A DNA stretch of 64,000 bases. Source: Mytilus californianus (lineage: Eukaryota). The notes below the pieces were generated by a model. That model worked only from the letters and a program-made list of their open reading frames with translations. It was not told where the DNA came from and did not search any database. Position 1 is the first letter of the stretch, and every line of letters starts with the position of its first letter. Made by a program: the position numbers and the translations under genes. The stretch is taken from assembly GCF_021869535.1 (NCBI RefSeq), contig NW_026262582.1:7378001-7442000 (forward strand), read 5' to 3'. Shown here one piece after another: positions 799-39,734 of this stretch.

Positions 799-3700
799 TT
801 AGCACTCGACAATAGAACATGGGTTTTCTTTCAACATCTTCTCAAATGGATTTTTCTTTGGAATACAATCAACATCGCTGCTGACGCCATATCTTCGTAT
901 TTTAACAGACTCAGTTTTGCCATCTTTTTCAACAGCATCTATTCGAACTGCATTATTAACTGACATTCCAGGGCTCTCATCAAAATAGTTAAATGGTATT
1001 AGATAGAAACTACGAGACATTCCTGGTGTGTGGGTACTAGGCAAGTCTTCCTTCTTAGGAATGTGGTACATTCCCATTGAAACCCAGGCAACAAGGTCCT
1101 GTCAACATAAATACATATAGATTCATTGAATATTTATACAAAAGCTTAGTTTTGTACCATTTTTTAAACTATAATAACATAAACGGATTGAATGAATTTT
1201 ATCCTTGGAGAATGTAAGAATTTTAGAAAACTATCTACTCAAAACTTTTCAAGCACAATCGTTCAATATTGCAGTATTATCAAAACTTTTTACATCTATC
1301 CTTTACACTAGTAATTTCCAGTGTCAATTTAAAGATTGACTACAACATCTTATTAAACAGAGCTTGTTCTGCATATGACATGTATTATGCTGAATTCATA
1401 CAGATCTTTCATCAAGACAAAAAGAAAAGGTATCTTGCAAATGAAAAAAAAAAACACTTTATAGATTTCGAGAGTCCTAAGTGTTTTTCTGGAATTGACT
1501 TCATTGAGAACTCTGAAAACATAATTTCATATCCAAACATCGGTATAATTCAAATCGCCTTAATTTATCCATTATTTCTTTAACTACGTTCTAATTGCAT
1601 TATTTCCCTAACATTGTATATTTTTTCCTAGTTTTCATAGTGAAAAATTTAGTATATAAAAGATAAGGAGATGAGGTATGATTGCCAATGAGACAACTAT
1701 CCACCAAAGTATACTTTTTTTCCAATATCTTTTAATTTGTTGTAAATGAAACATACTATAAATATACAAAAAAAAATGTGCTCAAAATTACGGATCATAC
1801 TATTCTATGAGTATAATGCACAAGGTTATTTCAACAATTTTTACTTCATTGTCAACAATACTGAATGAACAAAGTCATTACTTCTTTTTCGGTAGAGTAT
1901 AATTTTCCTTTATGCTTTCTATCAATATAGATCACTGGTCCCTGAGAATTTTCTACACTTGAGTTAACTTTTTATAGTAAATTGATGGAATGATATAAAG
2001 TATTGTAAATGCTTAAAACTTAAAACAGACCTCGATTTCTACCAACGGCGAAACTTTGATAAATTGCATTATAAGCTAATTAAAAGGTAATTTCAATAAA
2101 AAGTAATAATGAGAATTACTACGAATGATATTTGTGAAAAATATTTTACCTTACTTTACTTTTTTAAACGTATCAAAAGGTTTACTTTCAAGAAATTTAC
2201 CCTACGGTGCAAAACAACTGTTCGCTTTTAAATACTAAATTCGAAATATGAGAATACCGACATTACATAAAAAAAGATGTTCTCCAACAGTAATTTTCGA
2301 AACATTTAATTTACTATTAAAATAAATCCATATCATTGTTGGAGGGGACTCTTATATTGAGAGGACAAAAATAATGCAATAACATTAACGGTACCAATTT
2401 TACTGCGTATTTTGACAATCAATGTCAATTCAGTGATGCTCGAGAGGCCAAAATTTGGAAATCCAAAACTTACCAAAGTTGGAAGCATTCCTATAACTGA
2501 TATTTTTGTGTATGAATACTTTACCTGATCTACAATATTTTCGTTATCGTCAATGAACTCTTGAAAATTAAAAACAGGATTGTAAGAATGTGCAAACATG
2601 TTGCTACTCGATGGTTCACTATCTTTGTACTTAGTTACGGCAACCTGATATTGCGACCAGCTGGCAGCTGGATTGTTTCCATCATCTGGAGGTCTTGTGT
2701 TTTTTATCATTCCTTCATTTACCAGTCTATATCCTGCCGAATTGCCAAACTTGTCTTTGACATTATTATTAACAAACGTTAGATACTTTGGAAAGTTGAA
2801 GTCAAATTTATAGGCTCCTTCAAATTCAGTCTTCTTAAGTCGTTTTATAAACTGGTTTTGAATAATCGTGGCATTGGGAACATCACTTGCTTCATTTGGA
2901 GTAACGACGGATTCAATATCCAGAGTTTCGAATCTGTTCTTTGTTCCTTTAATGTCAAGGTCAACTTTGAAATGATATAAGTGTTGATGCAGAGGTGCCA
3001 TGAGGTTATCATCAAGCTGGAAACTAAATGGATTGTCTTGTCCATACCATGTGCTCGCAACAACACCGGAAGCTGTCACTTTAATTTTCATGACGCCATT
3101 ATGATAAAATATAAAATCAATAATGTACTCATATGGATAGACTGTCGGAATTGTCCTTACTATTAAAACAATATTTTCAACACCTTCATAGAAACTATGA
3201 ATATTTTTAAAGTATCCATGCTGACGACGAAGTGGTAGTCCTGTGTTGAATTCAAATACACAAATCGAATGTTCATTGAAAAGTGGTTTATCTTGGGTTT
3301 CAACCTTGTAAGATGAGCTAAGGAATGTAGCATCCAAAGGACAATCAACTCCAGGTACTAGATATTTTGCTAAAGTTCCTGTCTGGTAGCTGTTGTCTAG
3401 ATAAAAAGATGTATATTCAAACGGTTTATAGCCGAAATAAAATACTGCTAGTTCCTGTGTGCTAACTTCATATGCAATACGTTCATTTTTGTATCGGATG
3501 TCATTTAGCCTTGGTCCACGGAAAGCTGCATTCGCAACATCAAATTCCCAGAAGCCATATGATATATGTCTATCGTAAATATTGTATCGTTTACCATCAG
3601 GGGAAACTTGCTGGGGGTCCTTCAAGGGCTTTTCAAATGGAGGCATGCCTCTTGAGGTCAAAATACGACGAGAACTTCCATTGGCATCAGGAAAGGGAAC

Positions 3701-4467
3701 TTTTTGTATATTATGCTTGTATCTATTGTAATACCTAAGAACATCTTCTAAACATTTGAAGAAATGTCCATCGAACCATACTTTCAGCAGAGAAAAATTA
3801 TCAAGTTCCGATTCAACCAAAAAGGCAAAATCTAAAGGTCTCAATATGTTATATTCTACATTATGCTGCACCCACCAAAAGAATCTTCGCTTTCTTACGC
3901 CAGATATTACGGAAGTTACCTGATTAAAATAGTTAGCTATCAGGCATCTATCACCGCAATTAGTAAACCGTCCGCCGTACAGGTCTAACAACATGTCACC
4001 AAGTGTCCTGTCTAAAAAAATCAAAACTTTTCCAACGTAATCTGCTACATTAAAAGGTCTGTCTATGAAAGGAAGTGATTTTGGTCGGTACGGAACATGT
4101 TTATAGGCGGAAGGGTTTGGTAAAGGACCAACAACTATTTCAATGACGTCTGGTTTTGGAATAGCTCCTCTGAAAATCATAACCTGTGCTTCTCGTTCTG
4201 GTTGAGGATGTCCATTATCAAGGTGATTTAGTATATCCCTTTTTAAAGGCCGATATATATCAGCAATAAAAATATAGTTCGAAGTAACCGAAGCCTTTTC
4301 TGCAACAGTGAGGTTTAAACTTGATTCTGCATAAAGAAAATCAAGAAGGCCTTTAATTTCTGTTTGTGTTAAATCACGAAACACAGATGGATGATCACTT
4401 TCCCGAGTATCAATGTTGCCATATTGGGATGAAGGTCGTCTACAAATTGGAAGCCGGGAAATATTTT
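799..4467 (-). CDS. AOC: Copper-containing (TPQ) amine oxidase, AOC1/AOC3 family; 5'-partial model: exons 4467-2525 and 1098-799
   Basis: The large exon starts after a ttttatag acceptor (AG at 4469-4468). It encodes ...PSVFRDLT...YLDNSY (catalytic Asp)...TVYPYEY (TPQ region)...HQHLYHF (two Cu ligands)...FIDDNENIVDQ, then a GTAA donor at 2524. A ttgacag acceptor precedes 1098, giving the phase-0 join DQ|DLVAWVSMGMYHIP (third Cu His) and a stop at 799-801. About 746 aa are recovered. The upstream exon(s) carrying the N-terminus were not located. Confidence 0.93.
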
Positions 4468-27090: not shown

Positions 27091-27919
27091 AAGCTACAAA
27101 TTTCCTTTTCTGAAATGTAAAAGTGAACGGACAAACCAATTACTATATATAACACTGCGTTCGGAAACAGGTCGGTTAAACTAGTAAAAAACAAGTATAT
27201 AGTTAGGCTGTAATGTCATCGCTATTTCAAAGAAACACAATTGGGTATTTAAAACTATTAATTTTATTGCACAAAATACTGTCGAAATACTGACATTGGT
27301 CATCACAGCTCTTGCTGGCCATTTTCGTAAAGTCCGAACCATAGCATCACCATAGCAATAACTAAACATATAATAAACATGGAGGACACCTTCAGTGTTT
27401 GGTAAAGCATGTCACACTGAAATAGAATAATGCGCAAAATAAATTTTATAAATGAAAAGAAAAAGTCCTACAATAAATATACATGTATAAAAACAGCGTA
27501 CTTGAGAAATGTAAACGTCCTACTGAAAACATAATATACATGCATAAAAAAGAGTACTCATGAAAAGAAAAATGAAAGATAATATGTATATTAATATGGA
27601 TAATAGGGGTAAAAACAAAGTGTTACTAAAATATCCTTCATTCTTGTGTATGATAATTAGTAAAACACAAGCAAACCTTTATTTCTTTTTAATAATTGTT
27701 CCTCACGTTTGGATTGTTTGTGGGTATTCAAAACAAGAATTTTTGACATAATATATAATAAATATTTATTAAGTTCAATATACTGAATCCGTTCATGGTA
27801 TAAATAAGCTAGTTGGTGAGTGGTCTAAGGCGCTAAACCCATTTCAGACAGTGTTGACCTGATATTCAAATCTCGTTTAAGAATGAACAAATTTAGTCTT
27901 CAAAGTTAAATGCATGATT

Positions 27920-28475
27920 TTTTTATTAGTTGTTATTGGCTTTGAACTAGCTGTCAGTAACTGTGGGTTCTCTCAGATCTATACTTATTGTCTTTGTTGT
28001 TGTGGGGGTGTATAAATATCCTGCCACTTCCGGTCTGTGTTTTTGTTAGATGTATTCTGCTTTGTATCAATCTGATGAGTTAAGCCCTTTTTAACTGATT
28101 TTTACAGTTTGTTCTCATGTTGCACCACTGTCCAACGTAAGGGGGAGCGTTTTTCGCCAACAAACTTGTTTAGACCTGCCACATTCTGTATGTATTTGTC
28201 CAAAGTCAGGAGCCTGTAATTCAGTGGTTGTAGTTTGTTGCTGTATATCATGTATGTTTTTCGTTCATTGATTAGTTCATAACTCAGCCCGTTAGTTTTC
28301 TCGTTTGAATTGTTTTACATTTGTCATTTCGGGGTCTTTTATAGCTGACGATGCGGTATGGGTTTTGCTCATTGTTGAAGGCCGTGCGGTGACCTTTAGT
28401 TCTCTACGTCTATGTCATTTGGTCTCGGGTGGAGAGTTGTCTCATTGGAAATTATACCCCATCTTCTTATTTTTA
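27920..28475 (+). repeat. Family A repeat copy (long)
   Basis: ttattggctttgaactagctgtcagtaactg...ctgccacattctgtatg...caaagtcaggagcctg...ttgctcattgttgaaggccg...gagagttgtctcattgg. Confidence 0.8.
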
Positions 28476-29107
28476 TAAAAACATCTGCTCATTATTGCTT
28501 TCCTTCCGCAGCGGGATACTATTGTAAGATACCAATACACAGTATTAGTGATCAGCATAAACCTCACTAAAAGACTGGGATGAATTTGACCATATCTTTT
28601 CTTGTCCATTAAAATAGTTCCGTAATCCACAATAAAATAGATTTTACAGTTGACAGTTGACACCATGCACATTTGCGATTGTTTTTGTTTCTGTTTGTTA
28701 AGAAGAAGGAGTTATAGAGAAGGAAACATAAAAACTCGAAGACCTACGAAAATCAAGAGAGACGAAATTTTTTCATGTTGAGAAATAGATAGAAAATCAA
28801 AAATAATATATAATTTACTTCATAGATCTAAATATCACAATTATATATTATGACTGATAAGATAGTTCTTGTGTGTAGGGTTTGCCTATAGGCTAGCAAC
28901 CTATACCCTTTTTATGACTAACATTGTCGACGTGTGTATTTGCACTATCAATATATTTACTTCAAAGGCACAATTAGACCTGGAAGGTTTGATCGTGAAT
29001 TGTTAAAAAAATGCAGGTGGTCACGATATATTCGAGGTAAAAAAAAAAGGTTCGAATAAAAGAAGATCTTTCATCTACCTAATACCTTATTTTTCTAAAG
29101 AAAGAAA

Positions 29108-32100
29108 TCATTTAAAAAAATTGTTTGGTCTAATTACCTTCTGCTGACTTATTTTTAGATGTATCCGTTTCAAATGAGTCTGTATTGTTTGTTTAGTCTC
29201 GTTTTGAATAAATCTCTCCAACATATCTAGACATATCTGTTCGGCTTCAATAAGGTCATCTACACTACCATAGTTTAAGCAGAAATTTATATACTGTTGA
29301 TACATTTTCAAATGGTATTGTGTATTCATGATGTTACCACTTTCCCTAGCCTTCTGACACGCCATTTTATAATTCAGTTTTGCGTTTTGAATATTTTCTT
29401 TGGTGGGACTTAGAAGGTAGGTTTGAGCAATTTCGAGATAAATGCTTGTTAATACTATCCATTGTTCCATTTCCTTGGACAATCCCACTAATTTTTCTGC
29501 TTGAAACAACGCTTCCGAAAGATCGTTTTGGTCTCGGTCATTTTCCCACAATTTTACATAGCACTTGACTAACATCCGGGTAATTAAACATCTATGATGG
29601 AGGTTGAATTTCGGCGCCATTTTCAGCACACCAAATGATGCATAAAATGTAGCTGAACTTTTATTGAACATTTCGTCTAATGTAACAATCACATCTTTTA
29701 GTTCATTACTTTCAATTTTCTCGTTTGATCTGAGAAAATATAATATTCCATTTCGTTTTGTTACTGTACTCGCTAAAGGATTACAGGACGGGTAATGCTC
29801 GCGGTAATAGTTATTCAAATATTGCGCAAGATTATGCGCAAAACGAAACTCCGTTAAGCTATCGATCTGCTGTTCCTTATAAAAAGTACGATCACGTGGG
29901 TTTACTTTTGCCGCCTCCATCCACCATCTGTTTTTACTACTATTGTTCATCAGGGTTATTAGAAGGTCAATTAGAAATGTGTCTCTGATATTTGCAAAGG
30001 GCACGATTATATCTTTCAAAGTCATAGCTTTGACAATATGCAGAGGCAGCTTATTGTTTCGAATCTCTTTTGGATTCATTTTTCCGTAATGCTTAAATAG
30101 TTCAATTTCTCTCTCATTTCTGAATTTGTTCGTCAAAAACATTTCTACAAAGTCTAGCGAAACACTGGATATTGATATCTCTAATAATTTCAAGAAGACT
30201 TGTCTTGCCTCTTCCTGCTCGGTTAAATTGCCGTATAAATAGTCCTCCAAATGTGTAACATTACCCGTATGCAGTGCCCTTTCTGGCAAAGACATACATG
30301 CAATGTCCTGAAAAATAATTTGTTTGGCACGTGCAAAATAGTCTTCTGCTGATAGCTCTGTACTTCCGTATAACCGAAATGTCACTCCAATTGCACAACA
30401 TAAATAACTTTCATACACTTTGCTTTCGAAAGAGTCATCGAACAAATCACAATATTTTCGCAACAGCAAAACAGCATGATGGATAAAGCATATATTTCTC
30501 TTCATGGATTCTACAAGTCTAGCATCGGTGTCTAAATAATAGCAATAATGTCGTAAAAGGTGATTGACATCTTGACGTACTTTGTGTTGAGATTTAGCAT
30601 TCTCAATCATTAAAGAGGAGACTCCGTGCATCGATAGAATTCGTTTTTCACCAACGCCTTCAACAGTAGCCAATGAATAATTAGAGAGTACAAGCAATAG
30701 TTTATTAATTTCTATCTCTTTCTCTGCTCTAGATAACTGGTCCGACAGAAAACTTTTCAAAACTGTCACTGATATATTATTATGGTTTAAATAGGGAACA
30801 AGGGAAAGAACTCTTCGAGCAATGTTTGTAATTTCATCATCTAAACGTTGCAGAGTTATGCTGTAAGATCTAGCAAGGCTTTGTGTTCCCAGTGTGTCTG
30901 CCTGAAGCTGAGAGCCTAACAAATTTTTATTATATTCATAAACGCTGATATGCGTTATTTTTATAAACGATGCTGCAAGTGACAGAGCAAGGGGGAGATA
31001 ATCTAGATTTTTAGCCAATAATTTCACTTGCTTTTCTTCACTTCTGCATGAGAACGGAAAAAGGGACACTGCTTCCTTTTCAGTCATTTTATCCATTTCC
31101 ATTCCATAAATTTCGTAATGGTTCGATAAAAATCGTTTATTAGAGGTTGCTACTACATAAATATTTTCCGCTGTTATGAACCTGTCCATTGCATTGTAGA
31201 CAATGATGTCTTCCGGTGATTCGATGTCATCCAAAATTATCAAATGCTTTCGGGTCACATTTCTCTGATTGGTTAAATTTTCGATAGCCAAGTCAAGCAT
31301 TGTTCTTATACAGTCTCTTGTATCCGATTCACATAATATACATTCTATTTTCAAATGTGACATCAGTGTTGCAAATGACAAATAGACACTTCTCTCTGAT
31401 TTGCAATGAACCCGCCAGACAACGGAAGATGGATGATTTACCTGAAATTTTCTGGCATACCAAAAGGCACTCTGAGATTTCCCTGACCCATTGGGTCCTG
31501 TAATGAAACAAATATTCTTTTACCTCTTTTTGAGAACTTGTATTGATAAAAGGAATAATGAATTTTACGTCAATGACAAAGAATTTCAACAACAAAAAAT
31601 AAAACAGCTAGCAGTTAAAATTAAAAAATGAAGTCATGGATAAAAGTTCCACTGAATAATCCATGAGTAATCCATTTCATGTCACCTCACATGCAATTCT
31701 TGATAAATCGCAAGGAATAGGATGACCGTTGGCCCGTTATATAGATAGCAATAGATGGCCGAGAGGTTTCATTTATTTTTTAAATAACATTCACATTATA
31801 TATATATATATGAATTAGAAAAAGTAACGATACAATGAAACTTAGACTATATAAAATATACGCCGAAAAGTTTACCCTGAAGTCTTTATGATTCGTTCAC
31901 CCAAAACGTAAATTCATGGTAAAACAGAATACAGATCATGGATACTTGTCTACATATATCCCTCTTTAAAGGTATATAAGTGGGATTTTTTTCTGTAATC
32001 GATTTTCTTAAAATATTTTCTTGGGCATTAAGCAAATAATTATCTGCGCATCTTTCTCCAGTTTTCAAAAGTAATTACAACATTGTATTTCAAATCATTG

Positions 32101-34758
32101 GGGTGGGGCACTGATAATTACTCCTAATTTAAAGTATATTATCTTATATTTCAACTTTTTTCATGTAACTTTTAGATAATGATTCAACTTCTTGAAAATT
32201 ATAAATGCAAAAACTTATGTCTGAACTTATTCCTTTAGAATTTCAATTTAAAACTTCCAAATTTTAAATTTTGAAATGCCTAACCTTTAACAAGAACTGC
32301 TCTTTTTGTCTCAACAATGTCTATCATCTTTCTTAGCTGCTCTGTTTCCTTGAAATTTCCAACAACATTCATTGATCTGACGTCAAAACCATCTACAACA
32401 TAAATGATTAACTTTCAATTTCTTAGTACGCATTTTTTTTTTCTTCTTCGTTAAACGGAATGAACTAGCCATTGTCAAAATATATGCAGCAATAAAAGAG
32501 CTTTTTAATATGGCTATTCATAGTCCTGAAGTCCCAGTACGTCACCGCTGTTTGTGTCGTATTTAATGTGTTCAAATATAAATTTTTTTGTAGAAACGCC
32601 AGAAATTATTGTTGTTTTTCACTACATTGATTATACTCTGTATTGGATTTTAAAACACAACACAAAATTTATTTTTGCTCAATATTGTTGAAGGAAGTGT
32701 GGATGACCGTTAGCTGTTTAAATCCCTGTCTTTTAATCTTTGGTGGTATGTTCTCTCACTGGCGTTTATACCATATCTCTTTATGTTATCAAGCAATATG
32801 AACTATAATTAGCTCTTATAACCCACCATATCAGTAAATACAACACAAACATATTTAAAATGGATAAATAAGGAAAACTGAAATAACTCTCTCGGACTCC
32901 GTAATAGTATTGTCTTGGGATTGAGTAAACATTGAAGACTTACAATGATAATCATTGTTAAAAATATACCATGTTTCGAAATTTCATCAGAAGATATAGG
33001 AAAATCTGATTGGATGATATCATCTACTCCATCAATCCCAGCATTCTTCAGTAGCGATCTCACGTGCGGTAACTTTTCTTCTGTTAAGATTTCTTTCTTT
33101 TCCAGCATGTGTACCAGCTCCCGTCCATCTGTTACTTTATTCAGATCGGATTGATCCACTTTGTTTCGAAGGATAAATTTTAGATTCTTGATGTCATCTG
33201 AAAACAGTTTTACAGATTTATTTATAAGAATAAAATTTAAAAAAAAAGAATGTCTTGTGAGCAAACTAACTATTTGTATTTAAACATCATTTATTATCCT
33301 ACTGCTTGGCTATGGCTATACAACTTTCAGGTTAAAAATCAAGATCACAAAATGACTTTAAAAAACCCTGCAGCCATGCATTGCAATTTCATGGAGCATT
33401 TTGCAGTACTTTGTCATTGGGAGATCCCATCCCGAGCTAAATCCTATTTAATCTCAATGTTGAAGCTCAATGTAATCTAATACCTGTAGCACATGGAAGA
33501 AAAGCCATTCAAATTATGTCGTATTGATTGGTATTCCAATTTGCGATATTGGTGCATATTCTGGTATAAAACCACTAATTTATGGCTCCATTGGTGCACT
33601 AATTTTCGGCATTCATAGTCATAATTAAATTGAAATAAAGTGACAGTCATTTCAAGTCAAAACGATATTTTATACAGGCTTGTGCTGAAAGATTAAAAAT
33701 CCATTAATTGCAATTAAGGTCAAGTTACAGTAAACTGGCTATGTCACATATTTTGGGAGGTGAGCCTATTATTATTTCATCGTTTCCGCCGATTTTATGT
33801 GCTTTCTATACAAATGTTCACCTACTTTGATAGAATTCAATCAGTAATATTTCAGAAAATAAAAAAGATAAAGGCACTATATTTTCGATTTTCAGATAGA
33901 GTTCAACGAGCCAAAGTTGTATGCAAAATTTTACCAAAATCTGTGACATAGCCCATGTACTGTTATCGCACTTGTTTCCGGAAGTCGGGAAGTACAGAAC
34001 AGGTCCTTCTGGTCTGAGAAATAGGTAAATATGCCCTTCTCAACTTCATACACTTTTCAATAATTCAAACTAAATATTCAAAAAGGTTCAACAGTGATCC
34101 TAGGTCCTAAAGCTATCATTTCATACCAATATTACCCGAATATTTTAGTTACAGCAATGCTTAGGAACTATGGTGTGTGAAATGTGTATTATACTTTCTT
34201 CCTGACATGGTCCAAATTAAAGACACATAAAGCTTTAGTCCAAACACTAATTTATTGAATTCAAGCTCAAACTTGGTTGTTAGTAACTTATATTTTTCTG
34301 ACGGGCCCTAATTAGTGGTTTTATGCATTCTCATTGTAAAATAGAATCGTAGATTACAATATAAGTATGCTATTATCTTTGCCTGTTGTAGATAGACCAG
34401 AATGCATCAATTATTGCCGCTTGTTTGACTTCAGTCAGTTACACAATTTTGTTAATAAAATTTTTTATCTTGAAATGTCAGATAATACATCCTAAAAGTC
34501 TTAATTATGTAAATGAGTTAAATAATATGCAGCCCGGGGTATACATTGTAATAAGACAACAACAAAACGACGCAACCAAAAGCAAATTATGTTATGTATA
34601 TGGTGTATAAGCGATCTATATATATATAAAGCAACAATCTCTGCGGGTGAATCTTTATAGAATAAATCCTTACCTACTGAAAGACTTCTAGCAAGACGTT
34701 GGCAGATATTTTCATATCTGGAACTGTAGTTCACTAATGAATCATCCATGGAGTCCAT
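29108..34758 (-). CDS. DED-NB-ARC(STAND)-TPR-like protein, 936 aa; exons 34758-34674, 33197-32970, 32392-32285, 31497-29108
   Basis: All three introns are GT-AG and phase 1; exon lengths 85+228+108+2390 = 2811 nt = 937 codons. Exons 1-2 give a DED-like fold (YENICQRLARSLSV-DDIKNLKFIL...LVHMLEKKEIL). Exons 3-4 join as RAVLVKG|PNGSGKS (Walker A), followed by Walker B HLIILDD, YLPLAL (GxP-like), a winged-helix-like LSMHG and a helical C-terminus. Confidence 0.85.
33728..33962. mobile_element. MITE with TTA target duplication (PIF/Harbinger-like) in an intron of the NB-ARC gene
   Basis: tta|CAGTAAACTGGCTATGTCACATATTTTGG ... CCAAAATCTGTGACATAGCCCATGTACTG|tta: imperfect ~29-bp TIR, TTA on both flanks. 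Confidence 0.65.
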
Positions 34759-37230: not shown

Positions 37231-39734
37231 TAACCCGACTACTCCTGAAAGTATCATTAGTCTTCTTCACCTTTGAGGCGCATTGCTGCACTTATGGTAG
37301 AGCTATACAGCTGGTCGCTGTCTGGTTTTTTTTTCAAGTTCGATAATTACTTTATCTCCTATCAACTTATGAAGTACTACGCTTATTCTAAAGCTCTTAT
37401 TTATAAATCATCTTTTACGAGACAATTTGGTTAACCTTGTTTGCCCAAAAAATAAATATTCTACACATAATCATATAAGGACAAAAGTGGTTACCTTGTT
37501 CGCAAAGACTTCCCTTCTTGTGCATTTAATCAAAAAAAAAAATGTGGAATCCTTGAAATCATGTTTTTCATATCGCAATAAAGTTTCAAAAGGCCGTTCA
37601 GGTCAAACTTTCTTCTTTTACACTCTGATATAGCATTTGATCCTTATTTGGATTCCATTGAACAAAAAAACAACTCTAACCTCCGATAAGTCTTGCATAT
37701 CTTCATCCAAATTCGCCCCTTGCTTTGACATGTGATGATCTCAAATAGAGTAGGAACTCCAGTCATGCGTCAAAACATTTTCGAGTGTCGTCAAATGAGT
37801 TTTTTCAAGATAACAGTTGAAAGGGCAAGACACGCCTTGAAGAACGGGAGTATTGGGGCCATTTATTTCAAAGAATTACCTACAGTTGAAAACTTATGTT
37901 TGACCTGTAGCTGTTGTTTTTGTTTTATTTGTGTTGTTGTCTTATTGACGTATCCCTCTTATATCACAGTAGATTAAAAACACATAGACCATTTACATCG
38001 TAGATTTTCGTTGAAAAATATGGCATCATTCTGTAGAAAGTCAAGTGTTACAGAAGTATAATTTATTGATACAAAAAAAAATGAATGGAAAAGTCATCGA
38101 TAATAAAAAGTAGCTTTTTAAAAACTCATAAGCAGTTAAAAAAATACATAAAGAAGGCATGTAAATGTTCAAAAGCTAAAGGGAAAAAAGAAATTAAGAA
38201 ATTGTGTTGTGTAGTATTATAGCTGTTTGCATAAAAAAGAAGTAAAATATCCATTCAAACCTAATCGTTTATTTTTGTTTCGTTTTCTTCTATTTGTTAG
38301 CTGTACAAAAACACAACACCAATAGCTGTAAAAATATAGTTTTCACCAACATAAGTCTGCGTTATGCTGCGTTGTCCAGATAACATCACTTTTAACGACT
38401 GAAACTGACGAAAATTGGAAAATCTCAAAATGTGTAAAGATTCGTCTCAACATATTTTTTATGTATACAGAAAATAAATGACTGTAAGCGTATGATGCAA
38501 CATTTAGCATAAAGTCTTTTTACAAGCAACATCAGAAAACTCATATAGTACATCTAATTTACAAATGCACATCGGTAAAACAAAATTGAAACAATTCTTA
38601 TTTTGGAAGGCCTACATGGATTACCAACGAATTTATAAGTTTTTGAATCGTCTCAATGACTGTTGTAGTTATCTCCCTTTATATGTCAATTTACTTCTCG
38701 GTTTGATTATTTAACGGATTTTTACGGATTGGGTTATTATTGTTTTCTTAACGTCCAGTGACAAATATTTCATGCTTATTCCAAACAAGATCAAATTAAA
38801 CAGAACATCATATCAGTCCGTTTTCAAGGAGAAGGGCGAGAAAGTAAAACTGACACACAAACGTCATTTGCAAAGTAAAACCATTTTCATTATCAAAGCT
38901 TCATGCGTATACGTGCACGTAGTTATGTTGATTTTTTTAGCATGAAACTAAATTAGAAATACTTATAGATGCATCAAACTTCAATTACGAATGATTTTAA
39001 CAAAACAAATTTTCAGTGTTTACAAAAAGTTGAATGTATCAAAATGGATTTCAATAGCAATGTTAGGGATGAGCAATATTAATTTTAATGAATGTATGTG
39101 AAAATATTTAGGGGAGGGTTGACCACTCACAATGATGTTTAATCCCTCCATTTTCTGTTTGGTGCTACATGACAAGCCAGGAACGTGTAGTCCAGTTATT
39201 GTCGTGTGTTGCTGTTTGTCCTTGTTGTTTTAGCATAAAGCAGGCCTTTCATTTTCTATTTTTAATTGTTTCACGTCATTTTCCCCGGGCCTTTTATAGC
39301 TTTCTATACAGTACGAAGGCCAAACAGTGACCTGTATTTCTTCACAATGGTTCGTGCTTATCCTCTAAACTTTGAAGTTAAGAGATAACTTTGAAATCAA
39401 GAAATAGATACTTTAGATTTAATTAGTAAATTTGGCTGTACCTGCAGAAAACTTATTAAAAACGATATATCTTAAACGATAATTGTGCTGATGTGAACAC
39501 GAGGTGCACTGCTGGACATATATAAATAATAAAAAAAAAAAAAAAAGTACTCATGAGTATTTTTAATGTATTTTTGTTATTGATGCTATTTTCATTTGTC
39601 TATTATAATATCAGTCACATTATATACTGTACAATGTCTCATGTTTGTTGCTTATATTATCATAATTGCTAATTGTAAATGCCCCCTGTGGAACCCTGAT
39701 TGGAATAATAAAATATTTGATTTGATTTGGTATT

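Follow-up and report, generated by a model that had tools for sequence, protein, structure and literature searches.

The subject of this study is a minus-strand gene of the mussel Mytilus californianus, located in a 64,000-nt stretch of DNA (the window) that corresponds to positions 7,378,001 to 7,442,000 on the forward strand of contig NW_026262582.1 in the NCBI RefSeq assembly GCF_021869535.1. The window is AT-rich (~33% GC) and contains no runs of N, and all coordinates below are window positions. Five coding exons specify a protein of 964 amino acids (aa) that combines an N-terminal death effector domain (DED), a nucleotide-binding module of the STAND (signal transduction ATPases with numerous domains) class, a long alpha-helical region and a predicted C-terminal membrane anchor. 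The features of the gene are given below with the basis of each assignment in parentheses; X1 and X2 are two public sequencing runs described in the following section, and AF2 denotes an AlphaFold2 model.

34674-34758, minus strand: coding exon 1 (aa 1-28 plus 1 nt), with the start codon and DED helix 1 (open frame, GT donor).
32970-33197, minus strand: coding exon 2 (aa 29-104), with DED helices 2-6 and GIDGV at the RxDL site (Pfam, X1/X2 contigs).
32285-32392, minus strand: coding exon 3 (aa 105-140), with a linker and the first helix and strand of the nucleotide-binding domain (NBD) (spliced on both sides in X1/X2; AF2 helix at aa 122-134 and strand at aa 136-140).
30524-31497, minus strand: exon 4, part 1 (aa 141-465), an NB-ARC-type module of NBD, helical domain 1 (HD1) and winged-helix domain (WHD) (motifs, profile, fold).
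29204-30523, minus strand: exon 4, part 2 (aa 466-905), a TPR-type alpha-superhelix, the presumed sensor (AF2, VIA-align).
29138-29203, minus strand: end of exon 4 (aa 906-927), where a long terminal helix begins (contig pieces end at 29138).
29108-29137, minus strand: read-through tail of a four-exon model (10 codons and stop), intronic in the transcripts seen (depth).
27850-28650, unstranded: high-copy repeat within intron 4, outside the protein (read depth).
27303-27416, minus strand: coding exon 5 (aa 928-964 plus TGA), the predicted tail anchor (AG acceptor, open frame, X1/X2 contigs).

Gene model and transcript support

An earlier note, made from the letters of this DNA alone, had proposed a spliced minus-strand gene of four exons (34758-34674, 33197-32970, 32392-32285, and 31497-29108) encoding 936 aa. 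The open frame and the GT-AG borders of all of its introns were borne out, but its 3' end was not. By estimate, ~7% of random codons are stops given the local base composition, and the chance of an open exon 4 of 795 codons is roughly 1e-26. The list of open reading frames (ORFs) gives just a 757-aa ORF beginning past the P-loop, since the codon for the first glycine of the P-loop (GPNGSGKS) is interrupted by intron 3 and the DED sits on exons 1-2; the note was correct that both elements are missed in this way.

Transcript support was assessed using four public runs placed on window 27250-33249, i.e., on exons 2-5. Runs X1 and X2 each provided one transcript contig (2978 nt and 3212 nt, respectively), and the pieces of these contigs are consecutive without gaps at 33199/7-32970, 32392-32284/5, 31496/7-29138, and 27416 onward, with an intron depth of zero in both runs. 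The predicted junctions 32970/32392 and 32285/31497 were both seen exactly in the two contigs, so that spliced transcripts joining DED exon 2 through exon 3 to NB-ARC exon 4 are present. In the DNA run X15, contigs cross the introns unspliced. Raw RNA-seq reads (run X21) were thin, lay over exon 4 only, and had a single mate orientation, which fits a minus-strand mRNA. Expression of the gene was low and steady across several unrelated studies.

The junction between exons 1 and 2 (34674/33197) is supported indirectly. The X1 and X2 contigs extend 111 and 362 nt upstream of exon 2, independent annotations of the orthologues in other Mytilus species use the same first three junctions as the four-exon model, including 34674/33197, and the Pfam DED match and a confidently predicted helix 1 both span the junction. 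The N-terminus encoded by exon 1 is identical in the M. coruscus orthologue model P0001, and a single substitution (N17K) is found in P0002 (M. trossulus), P0199, and P0200.

At the 3' end, exon 4 stops at 29138 after codon 927, a GTAATT donor follows at 29137, and position 29138 is joined to 27416 in both the X1 and X2 contigs. In these runs the bin at 29050-29249 had 0.56 of the exon depth, as expected for coverage starting at 29138, and depth was zero at 28650-29049. Exon 5 (27416-27303) has an AG acceptor before 27416, is open for 37 codons, and ends in a TGA at 27303-27305 with an AATAAA shortly after. The 44 extra C-terminal residues of the M. trossulus orthologue LOC134694702 match window 27437-27306 in a tblastn comparison. 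The true product is 964 aa from five coding exons, and 29137-29108, the last 10 codons of the four-exon model, are intronic. Intron 4 also holds the high-copy repeat at 27850-28650. Over this repeat, contig depths sum to 1e5-1e6 (DNA run) and 1e3-1e4 (RNA runs), and chimeric joints and loose ends are numerous. It probably represents a transcribed element, either a short interspersed one or one resembling a miniature inverted-repeat transposable element.

Domain architecture of the protein

The N-terminus was identified as a DED, in agreement with the earlier note. The Pfam DED model (PF01335) scored 36.8 bits against a cut-off of 35.9 on M. coruscus P0001, which is 99% identical to the window protein; exon 2 on its own scored 36.6 bits, and the M. 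trossulus orthologue scored 34.2 bits, slightly below the cut-off. A profile built from 23 family members matched the DEDs of cFLIP (DED2, 1.4e-9, the best PDB match), caspase-8, FADD, and PEA-15 (to 1e-5). An AF2 model built on a 71-sequence alignment (mean predicted local distance difference test score, pLDDT, 88.4) places six helices in this domain, at residues 14-25, 28-38, 44-48, 53-62, 68-80, and 86-90, with block pLDDT values of 78-97.

The RxDL motif, part of the charge triad in helix 6, reads GIDGV in this protein and in both aligned orthologues (M. coruscus and M. trossulus), an absence that the note had already remarked. Paralogues have GRIDL, GRHDL, GRNDL, or GRRDL at the same site, so the loss is derived in the orthologue group of this gene. 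The helix-2 KF(I/L) patch used in DED-DED contacts is retained and aligns with that of caspase-8. With the motif lost, this DED may either signal or only regulate. Because RxDL is lost, a decoy role is a serious rival to a signalling one: a DED of the cFLIP, PEA-15, or vFLIP kind would tie up FADD or DED-caspases on a membrane under the control of the NTPase and TPR module, and the output would be anti-death or of NF-kB type. The restriction of GIDGV to the orthologues, the best PDB profile match to cFLIP DED2, and the retained contact patch are all consistent with this reading. The remainder of the protein, however, is a complete NB-ARC switch with its histidine and P-loop intact, such a switch drives assembly in known systems, and no result here shows inhibition. 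We regard the decoy role as unlikely, although it is to be taken seriously.

The nucleotide-binding part was assigned to the NB-ARC type by profile, predicted fold, and motifs, although the Pfam NB-ARC test fails. The comparison against Pfam had a divided outcome for the earlier note, in that the DED passes but the NB-ARC (PF00931) and TPR models gave no match at E<=1 on this protein; the NACHT model likewise gave none at that threshold. The Pfam models AAA_22 (24.8 bits) and nSTAND3 (19.7 bits) matched the NTPase below their cut-offs; the NCBIfam model FxSxx_TPR matched it at 8.5e-23. Among the 23 family members, seven were matched by the Pfam NB-ARC model, the best at 3.4e-7. The family profile matched the NB-ARC domains of the plant proteins NRC2, NRC3, and NRC1 (6e-7), Drosophila Dark (1e-5), and Roq1; NACHT proteins were absent from its matches. 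When the predicted structure was searched using Foldseek, 49 of the best 50 matches were CED-4, Apaf-1, Dark, NRC, ZAR1, Sr35, and other plant NLRs (2e-11 to 9e-7). No NACHT protein is present among the 50, and only the match at rank 40, to ORC/Cdc6 of Drosophila, falls outside this group. The lowest root mean square deviations (rmsd; 5.3-5.7 A over about 396 columns) were obtained with closed Apaf-1 (3sfz/3shf) and resting NRC2. The note's assignment of the NTPase to the NB-ARC type therefore stands. A NACHT assignment, suggested by weak matches in three of the 23 relatives, was rejected on the profile and fold evidence. Comparison of exon 4 as a single sequence against the PDB using phmmer produced matches to coronavirus spike S2 only, attributable to chance (E about 0.4), and the family profile was needed.

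The NTPase motifs comprise the P-loop GPNGSGKS (G141-S148, with the lysine K147), the Walker B segment LIILDD (D230/D231), LPLAL (P309), and SMHG (H431). The columns of G141, K147, P309, and H431 are among those invariant in the 23 aligned family sequences. Bivalve family members do not conserve an arginine in the sensor-1 column, where this protein has N260.

The region past the NB-ARC module (about 440-480 residues) is all helical in the AF2 model, with a pLDDT of 89.5 and a predicted template modelling score (pTM) of 0.86, and on the strength of this model it is assigned as a right-handed TPR-type superhelix along its entire length. The earlier note had described it as helical without LRR or WD40 repeats, which agrees with the lack of any Pfam match to WD40 or LRR on this protein, and had confined the TPR-like repeats to its end, which does not hold for the model. 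An exhaustive structure search using VIA-align gave Z scores of 18.2 for APPBP2, 17.1 for the TPR domain of LGN (294/330 residues aligned, rmsd 4.5), 16.8 for NprR, and 15.2 for domain III of MalT, with the peptide-sensing Rap/PlcR proteins, to whose kind NprR belongs, also found. These alignments span model residues 8-496, nearly the whole domain, and their Z scores of 15-18 lie moderately above the noise level that the tool states for helical repeats (about 13-14). Foldseek matches to TPR solenoids were weak (3e-4). No Pfam TPR family matched this protein at E<=1, and the Pfam TPR models match one or two of the 23 relatives.

Exon 5 adds 37 residues carrying one C-terminal transmembrane (TM) helix, at about aa 937-957 of 964 (27327-27389), which is followed by seven residues and forms the end of one long helix in the AF2 model. 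The Kyte-Doolittle hydropathy over 19 residues is 2.44 at this helix, and the maximum elsewhere is 1.54, as seen in the tail-less P0001. The one TM helix predicted for the protein lies at most about 30 residues from its C-terminus, no signal peptide or other TM segment is present, and the protein is thus classified by prediction as tail-anchored. The earlier note had modelled the receptor without the last exon; with that exon the gene specifies a predicted membrane protein, not a soluble cytosolic one. An acidic lysine-free stub (here ENGQQEL) after a very hydrophobic TM helix hints at the endoplasmic reticulum (ER) rather than mitochondria, as a rule of thumb only. The tail is identical to that of M. 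trossulus at 27 of 31 residues (87%) and is found in four of the five public orthologue models, one each from M. trossulus and M. galloprovincialis and two from separate annotations of M. edulis.

A functional soluble product of 936 aa would arise if intron 4 were retained, the tail-anchored form then being a minor isoform. The frame does remain open for 10 codons beyond the donor, and the public M. coruscus model P0001 lacks the tail, but both transcript contigs are spliced at 29138/27416, depth is zero in the intron beside exon 4, and the tail is conserved in the four models just named. This explanation is accordingly considered very improbable.

The CARD-headed paralogue models of M. edulis, M. 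trossulus, and M. galloprovincialis also end in a tail anchor, of different sequence. The annotated stop of the M. coruscus CARD paralogue P0004 (positions 38100-38150 of its own locus, L001) follows a donor-like GTGAGT site right after the residues ISN, and this model probably misses its last exon too, judging from that sequence. No last exon for P0004 was identified within 6 kb downstream by tblastn with the M. edulis tail, and a scan for hydrophobic ORFs returned only candidates at the chance level of AT-rich DNA, with comparable false candidates from a control on the window. Among 168 scanned relatives of at least 300 aa, only the Mytilus models P0002 and P0005, one metagenome hit, and one Aspergillus hit end in a TM helix. 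A literature search found no description of tail-anchored NB-ARC proteins or of this Mytilus family, which is weak evidence of absence.

Annotation, relatives and conservation

The earlier note had described the gene as unannotated-looking, but public models exist in M. coruscus, M. trossulus, M. galloprovincialis, and M. edulis. A word-index protein search returned five relatives only, among them M. coruscus P0001 ("unnamed protein product / DED domain-containing protein", 922 aa) and M. trossulus LOC134694702 (P0002; 966 aa, 92% identical), and a cluster look-up added 966-aa RefSeq models in M. galloprovincialis and M. edulis. In all of these species the gene is annotated solely as uncharacterized or DED domain-containing. 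An older M. edulis orthologue model, CAG2257198.1 (P0198), is named "ntrX", an automatic misnomer derived from the P-loop NTPase.

An exhaustive search of 1.84 billion representatives produced 214 hits at E<=1e-3, of which 13 were at E<=1e-30. The relatives that align over their full length were confined to pteriomorph bivalves (Mytilus, two scallops, Argopecten and Ylistrum, and the ark shell Tegillarca) and, more distantly, amphioxus; beyond bivalves and amphioxus the NTPase alone aligns, e.g., with NLR-like proteins of Fusarium and Aspergillus. In the ESM Atlas, the closest feature cluster is a cnidarian family with the domains DED, AAA_22, and TPR_12. The 23 aligned members have a DED head in 11 cases and a CARD head in three, and the CARD paralogues show 43% identity to this gene. 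In the CARD paralogues P0004 and P0005, a second, DED-like domain lies between CARD and NTPase at residues about 130-215. It can be aligned to the DED of this gene, although Pfam does not detect it, and it gives these proteins two death-fold domains in tandem. The Branchiostoma floridae protein XP_002588457.1 (P0046; 1194 aa) has the DED-like, NTPase, and helical module at residues about 376-1017. The module is preceded by a start that looks like a signal peptide, by an FN3 annotation, and by a very hydrophobic stretch (Kyte-Doolittle 3.25) at about 349-367. The entry represents either a membrane-spanning receptor whose STAND module is intracellular or a gene model that fuses separate genes.

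All domains are 89-94% identical between Mytilus species. This even and fairly high conservation, together with the presence of one orthologue per annotated genome, low and steady expression, and TPR structural neighbours that are mostly scaffolds (APPBP2, LGN, and APC subunits), would suit a housekeeping STAND protein outside immunity and cell death, i.e., a membrane-tethered scaffold for organelle biology or trafficking in which the DED is a generic interaction module. STAND proteins of the NPHP3, NWD1, and TRANK1 type are not immune receptors. Set against this, full-length relatives are limited to few marine invertebrate lineages, and each genome has several paralogues that swap DED and CARD heads, a pattern typical of immune and death families. 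The housekeeping explanation is considered improbable, somewhat more so than the decoy role.

Tandem paralogues were sought in the window by tblastn with five family members, and only this gene was matched. The neighbouring gene at 2333-4384 (minus strand), an ORF of 683 aa, is unrelated and codes for a copper amine oxidase, with Pfam matches to Cu_amine_oxid at 2.7e-81 and to the N2 domain at 7e-10.

Proposed function and comparison with known systems

The reading we favour, at about even chances, is that this five-exon gene encodes a tail-anchored STAND receptor that acts as a ligand-triggered, membrane-tethered NB-ARC platform for the clustering of DEDs. The entire protein would face the cytosol from an organelle membrane (the ER or the mitochondrial outer membrane). 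At rest the NB-ARC module would be closed with ADP, for which the P-loop lysine, the Walker B aspartates, and the MHD-type histidine are retained. Binding of a ligand to the TPR superhelix would release the closed state, allowing nucleotide exchange and assembly of a ring or other oligomer, and the DEDs thereby clustered at the membrane surface would recruit or regulate DED partners. The assembly would then act as a platform on the membrane, similar to an apoptosome or a death-inducing signalling complex (DISC). In molluscs, FADD and DED-caspases have been reported, so that such partners exist, and APAF-1 has been reported absent (PMC11463336).

The exon structure, expression, domain identities (by profile and predicted fold), and tail conservation are established by the data given above; the mechanism itself is drawn from analogy with Apaf-1/CED-4, plant NLRs, and MalT, and the membrane placement is likened to that of MAVS. 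Several points weigh against it. The structures used are predictions, and the Pfam NB-ARC and TPR models do not recognize the protein. Nucleotide hydrolysis may be weak with the sensor-1 arginine absent (N260), and the DED may not nucleate DED filaments with its RxDL charge-triad motif lost. The even conservation between species gives no sign of the fast-evolving sensor often seen in immune receptors. A broader and more speculative proposal, which we hold to be doubtful, is that mussels, which are reported to be without APAF-1, use a small family of tail-anchored death-fold-NB-ARC-TPR proteins as apoptosome- or DISC-like platforms on organelles, the DED form serving DED-caspases and FADD and the CARD paralogues serving CARD-caspases.

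Apoptosomes, inflammasomes, and plant resistosomes are all built around proteins that join a death-fold domain, a STAND NTPase, and a repeat region. In invertebrates such proteins have been catalogued mainly by counts of Pfam domains, and the present family is nearly invisible to the Pfam NB-ARC and TPR models, so domain-based surveys, including one that concluded that molluscs are without APAF-1-type activators, would miss it. Bivalves have greatly expanded sets of death and immune genes and suffer transmissible cancers. The gene is a testable entry point into bivalve caspase activation and, if the favoured reading is correct, sensor, switch, adaptor, and membrane tether are all contained in a single polypeptide. 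The new elements are the corrected gene model, a bivalve and amphioxus family that is of NB-ARC type though missed by Pfam, a conserved tail anchor for which no description was found in the literature searched, and the occurrence of DED and CARD versions together in an animal group reported to be without APAF-1. Pending a demonstration of function the step forward is modest, as the gene was already in public annotation and its tripartite architecture is of a familiar type.

Death/DED/CARD-NB-ARC/NACHT-TPR proteins have been described in the cnidarians and placozoans Hydra, Acropora, and Trichoplax (PMC7642931, PMC4083563, PMC6321704). These NLR-like proteins have the same succession of death-fold head, STAND NTPase, and TPR-type sensor and likewise form lineage-specific families. 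The Mytilus family differs from them in its occurrence in bivalves and amphioxus, in an NTPase and repeats too divergent for the Pfam NB-ARC and TPR models, and in the C-terminal tail anchor carried by this gene and its CARD paralogues, which was not found described for such proteins.

Apaf-1, CED-4, and Dark are the best structural matches for the death-fold and NBD-HD1-WHD module (Foldseek, 2e-11 to 1e-10) and share with it the P-loop, a GLPLA-like motif, and the MHD/LHD-type histidine. The head of the Mytilus protein is a DED where Apaf-1 has a CARD, and a TPR-type superhelix takes the place of the WD40 propellers; CED-4 is without a repeat domain. The Mytilus protein also has a membrane anchor of its own, whereas CED-4 is tethered indirectly via CED-9. 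Identity as an APAF-1 orthologue was ruled out on the DED head, the TPR-type superhelix, and the lack of a WD40 match, and identity as a canonical animal NLR (NACHT-LRR) on the lack of NACHT and LRR Pfam matches and the NB-ARC identity of the structural neighbours.

MAVS is a CARD adaptor held by a C-terminal tail anchor on mitochondria, peroxisomes, and mitochondria-associated membranes and is activated by upstream RIG-I-like receptors. The likeness lies in a death-fold signalling domain placed on an organelle via a C-terminal TM helix and, for the Mytilus protein by analogy, oligomerising on a membrane platform. MAVS has no NTPase or repeat sensor, whereas the Mytilus protein joins sensor, switch, and adaptor in one chain. 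The presence of a tail anchor in both the DED-headed and the CARD-headed Mytilus lineages suggests assembly on a membrane surface, which is known for MAVS and Bcl-2/CED-9 and was not found described for an NB-ARC receptor itself. In MalT and the bacterial and fungal NB-ARC-TPR STAND proteins (among them the TPR protein of the FxSxx-COOH system and fungal NLRs), a STAND NTPase is likewise followed by an inducer-binding TPR/SUPR superhelix; these proteins have neither a DED nor a tail anchor, and DNA-binding domains, enzymes, or prion-like motifs serve as their effectors.

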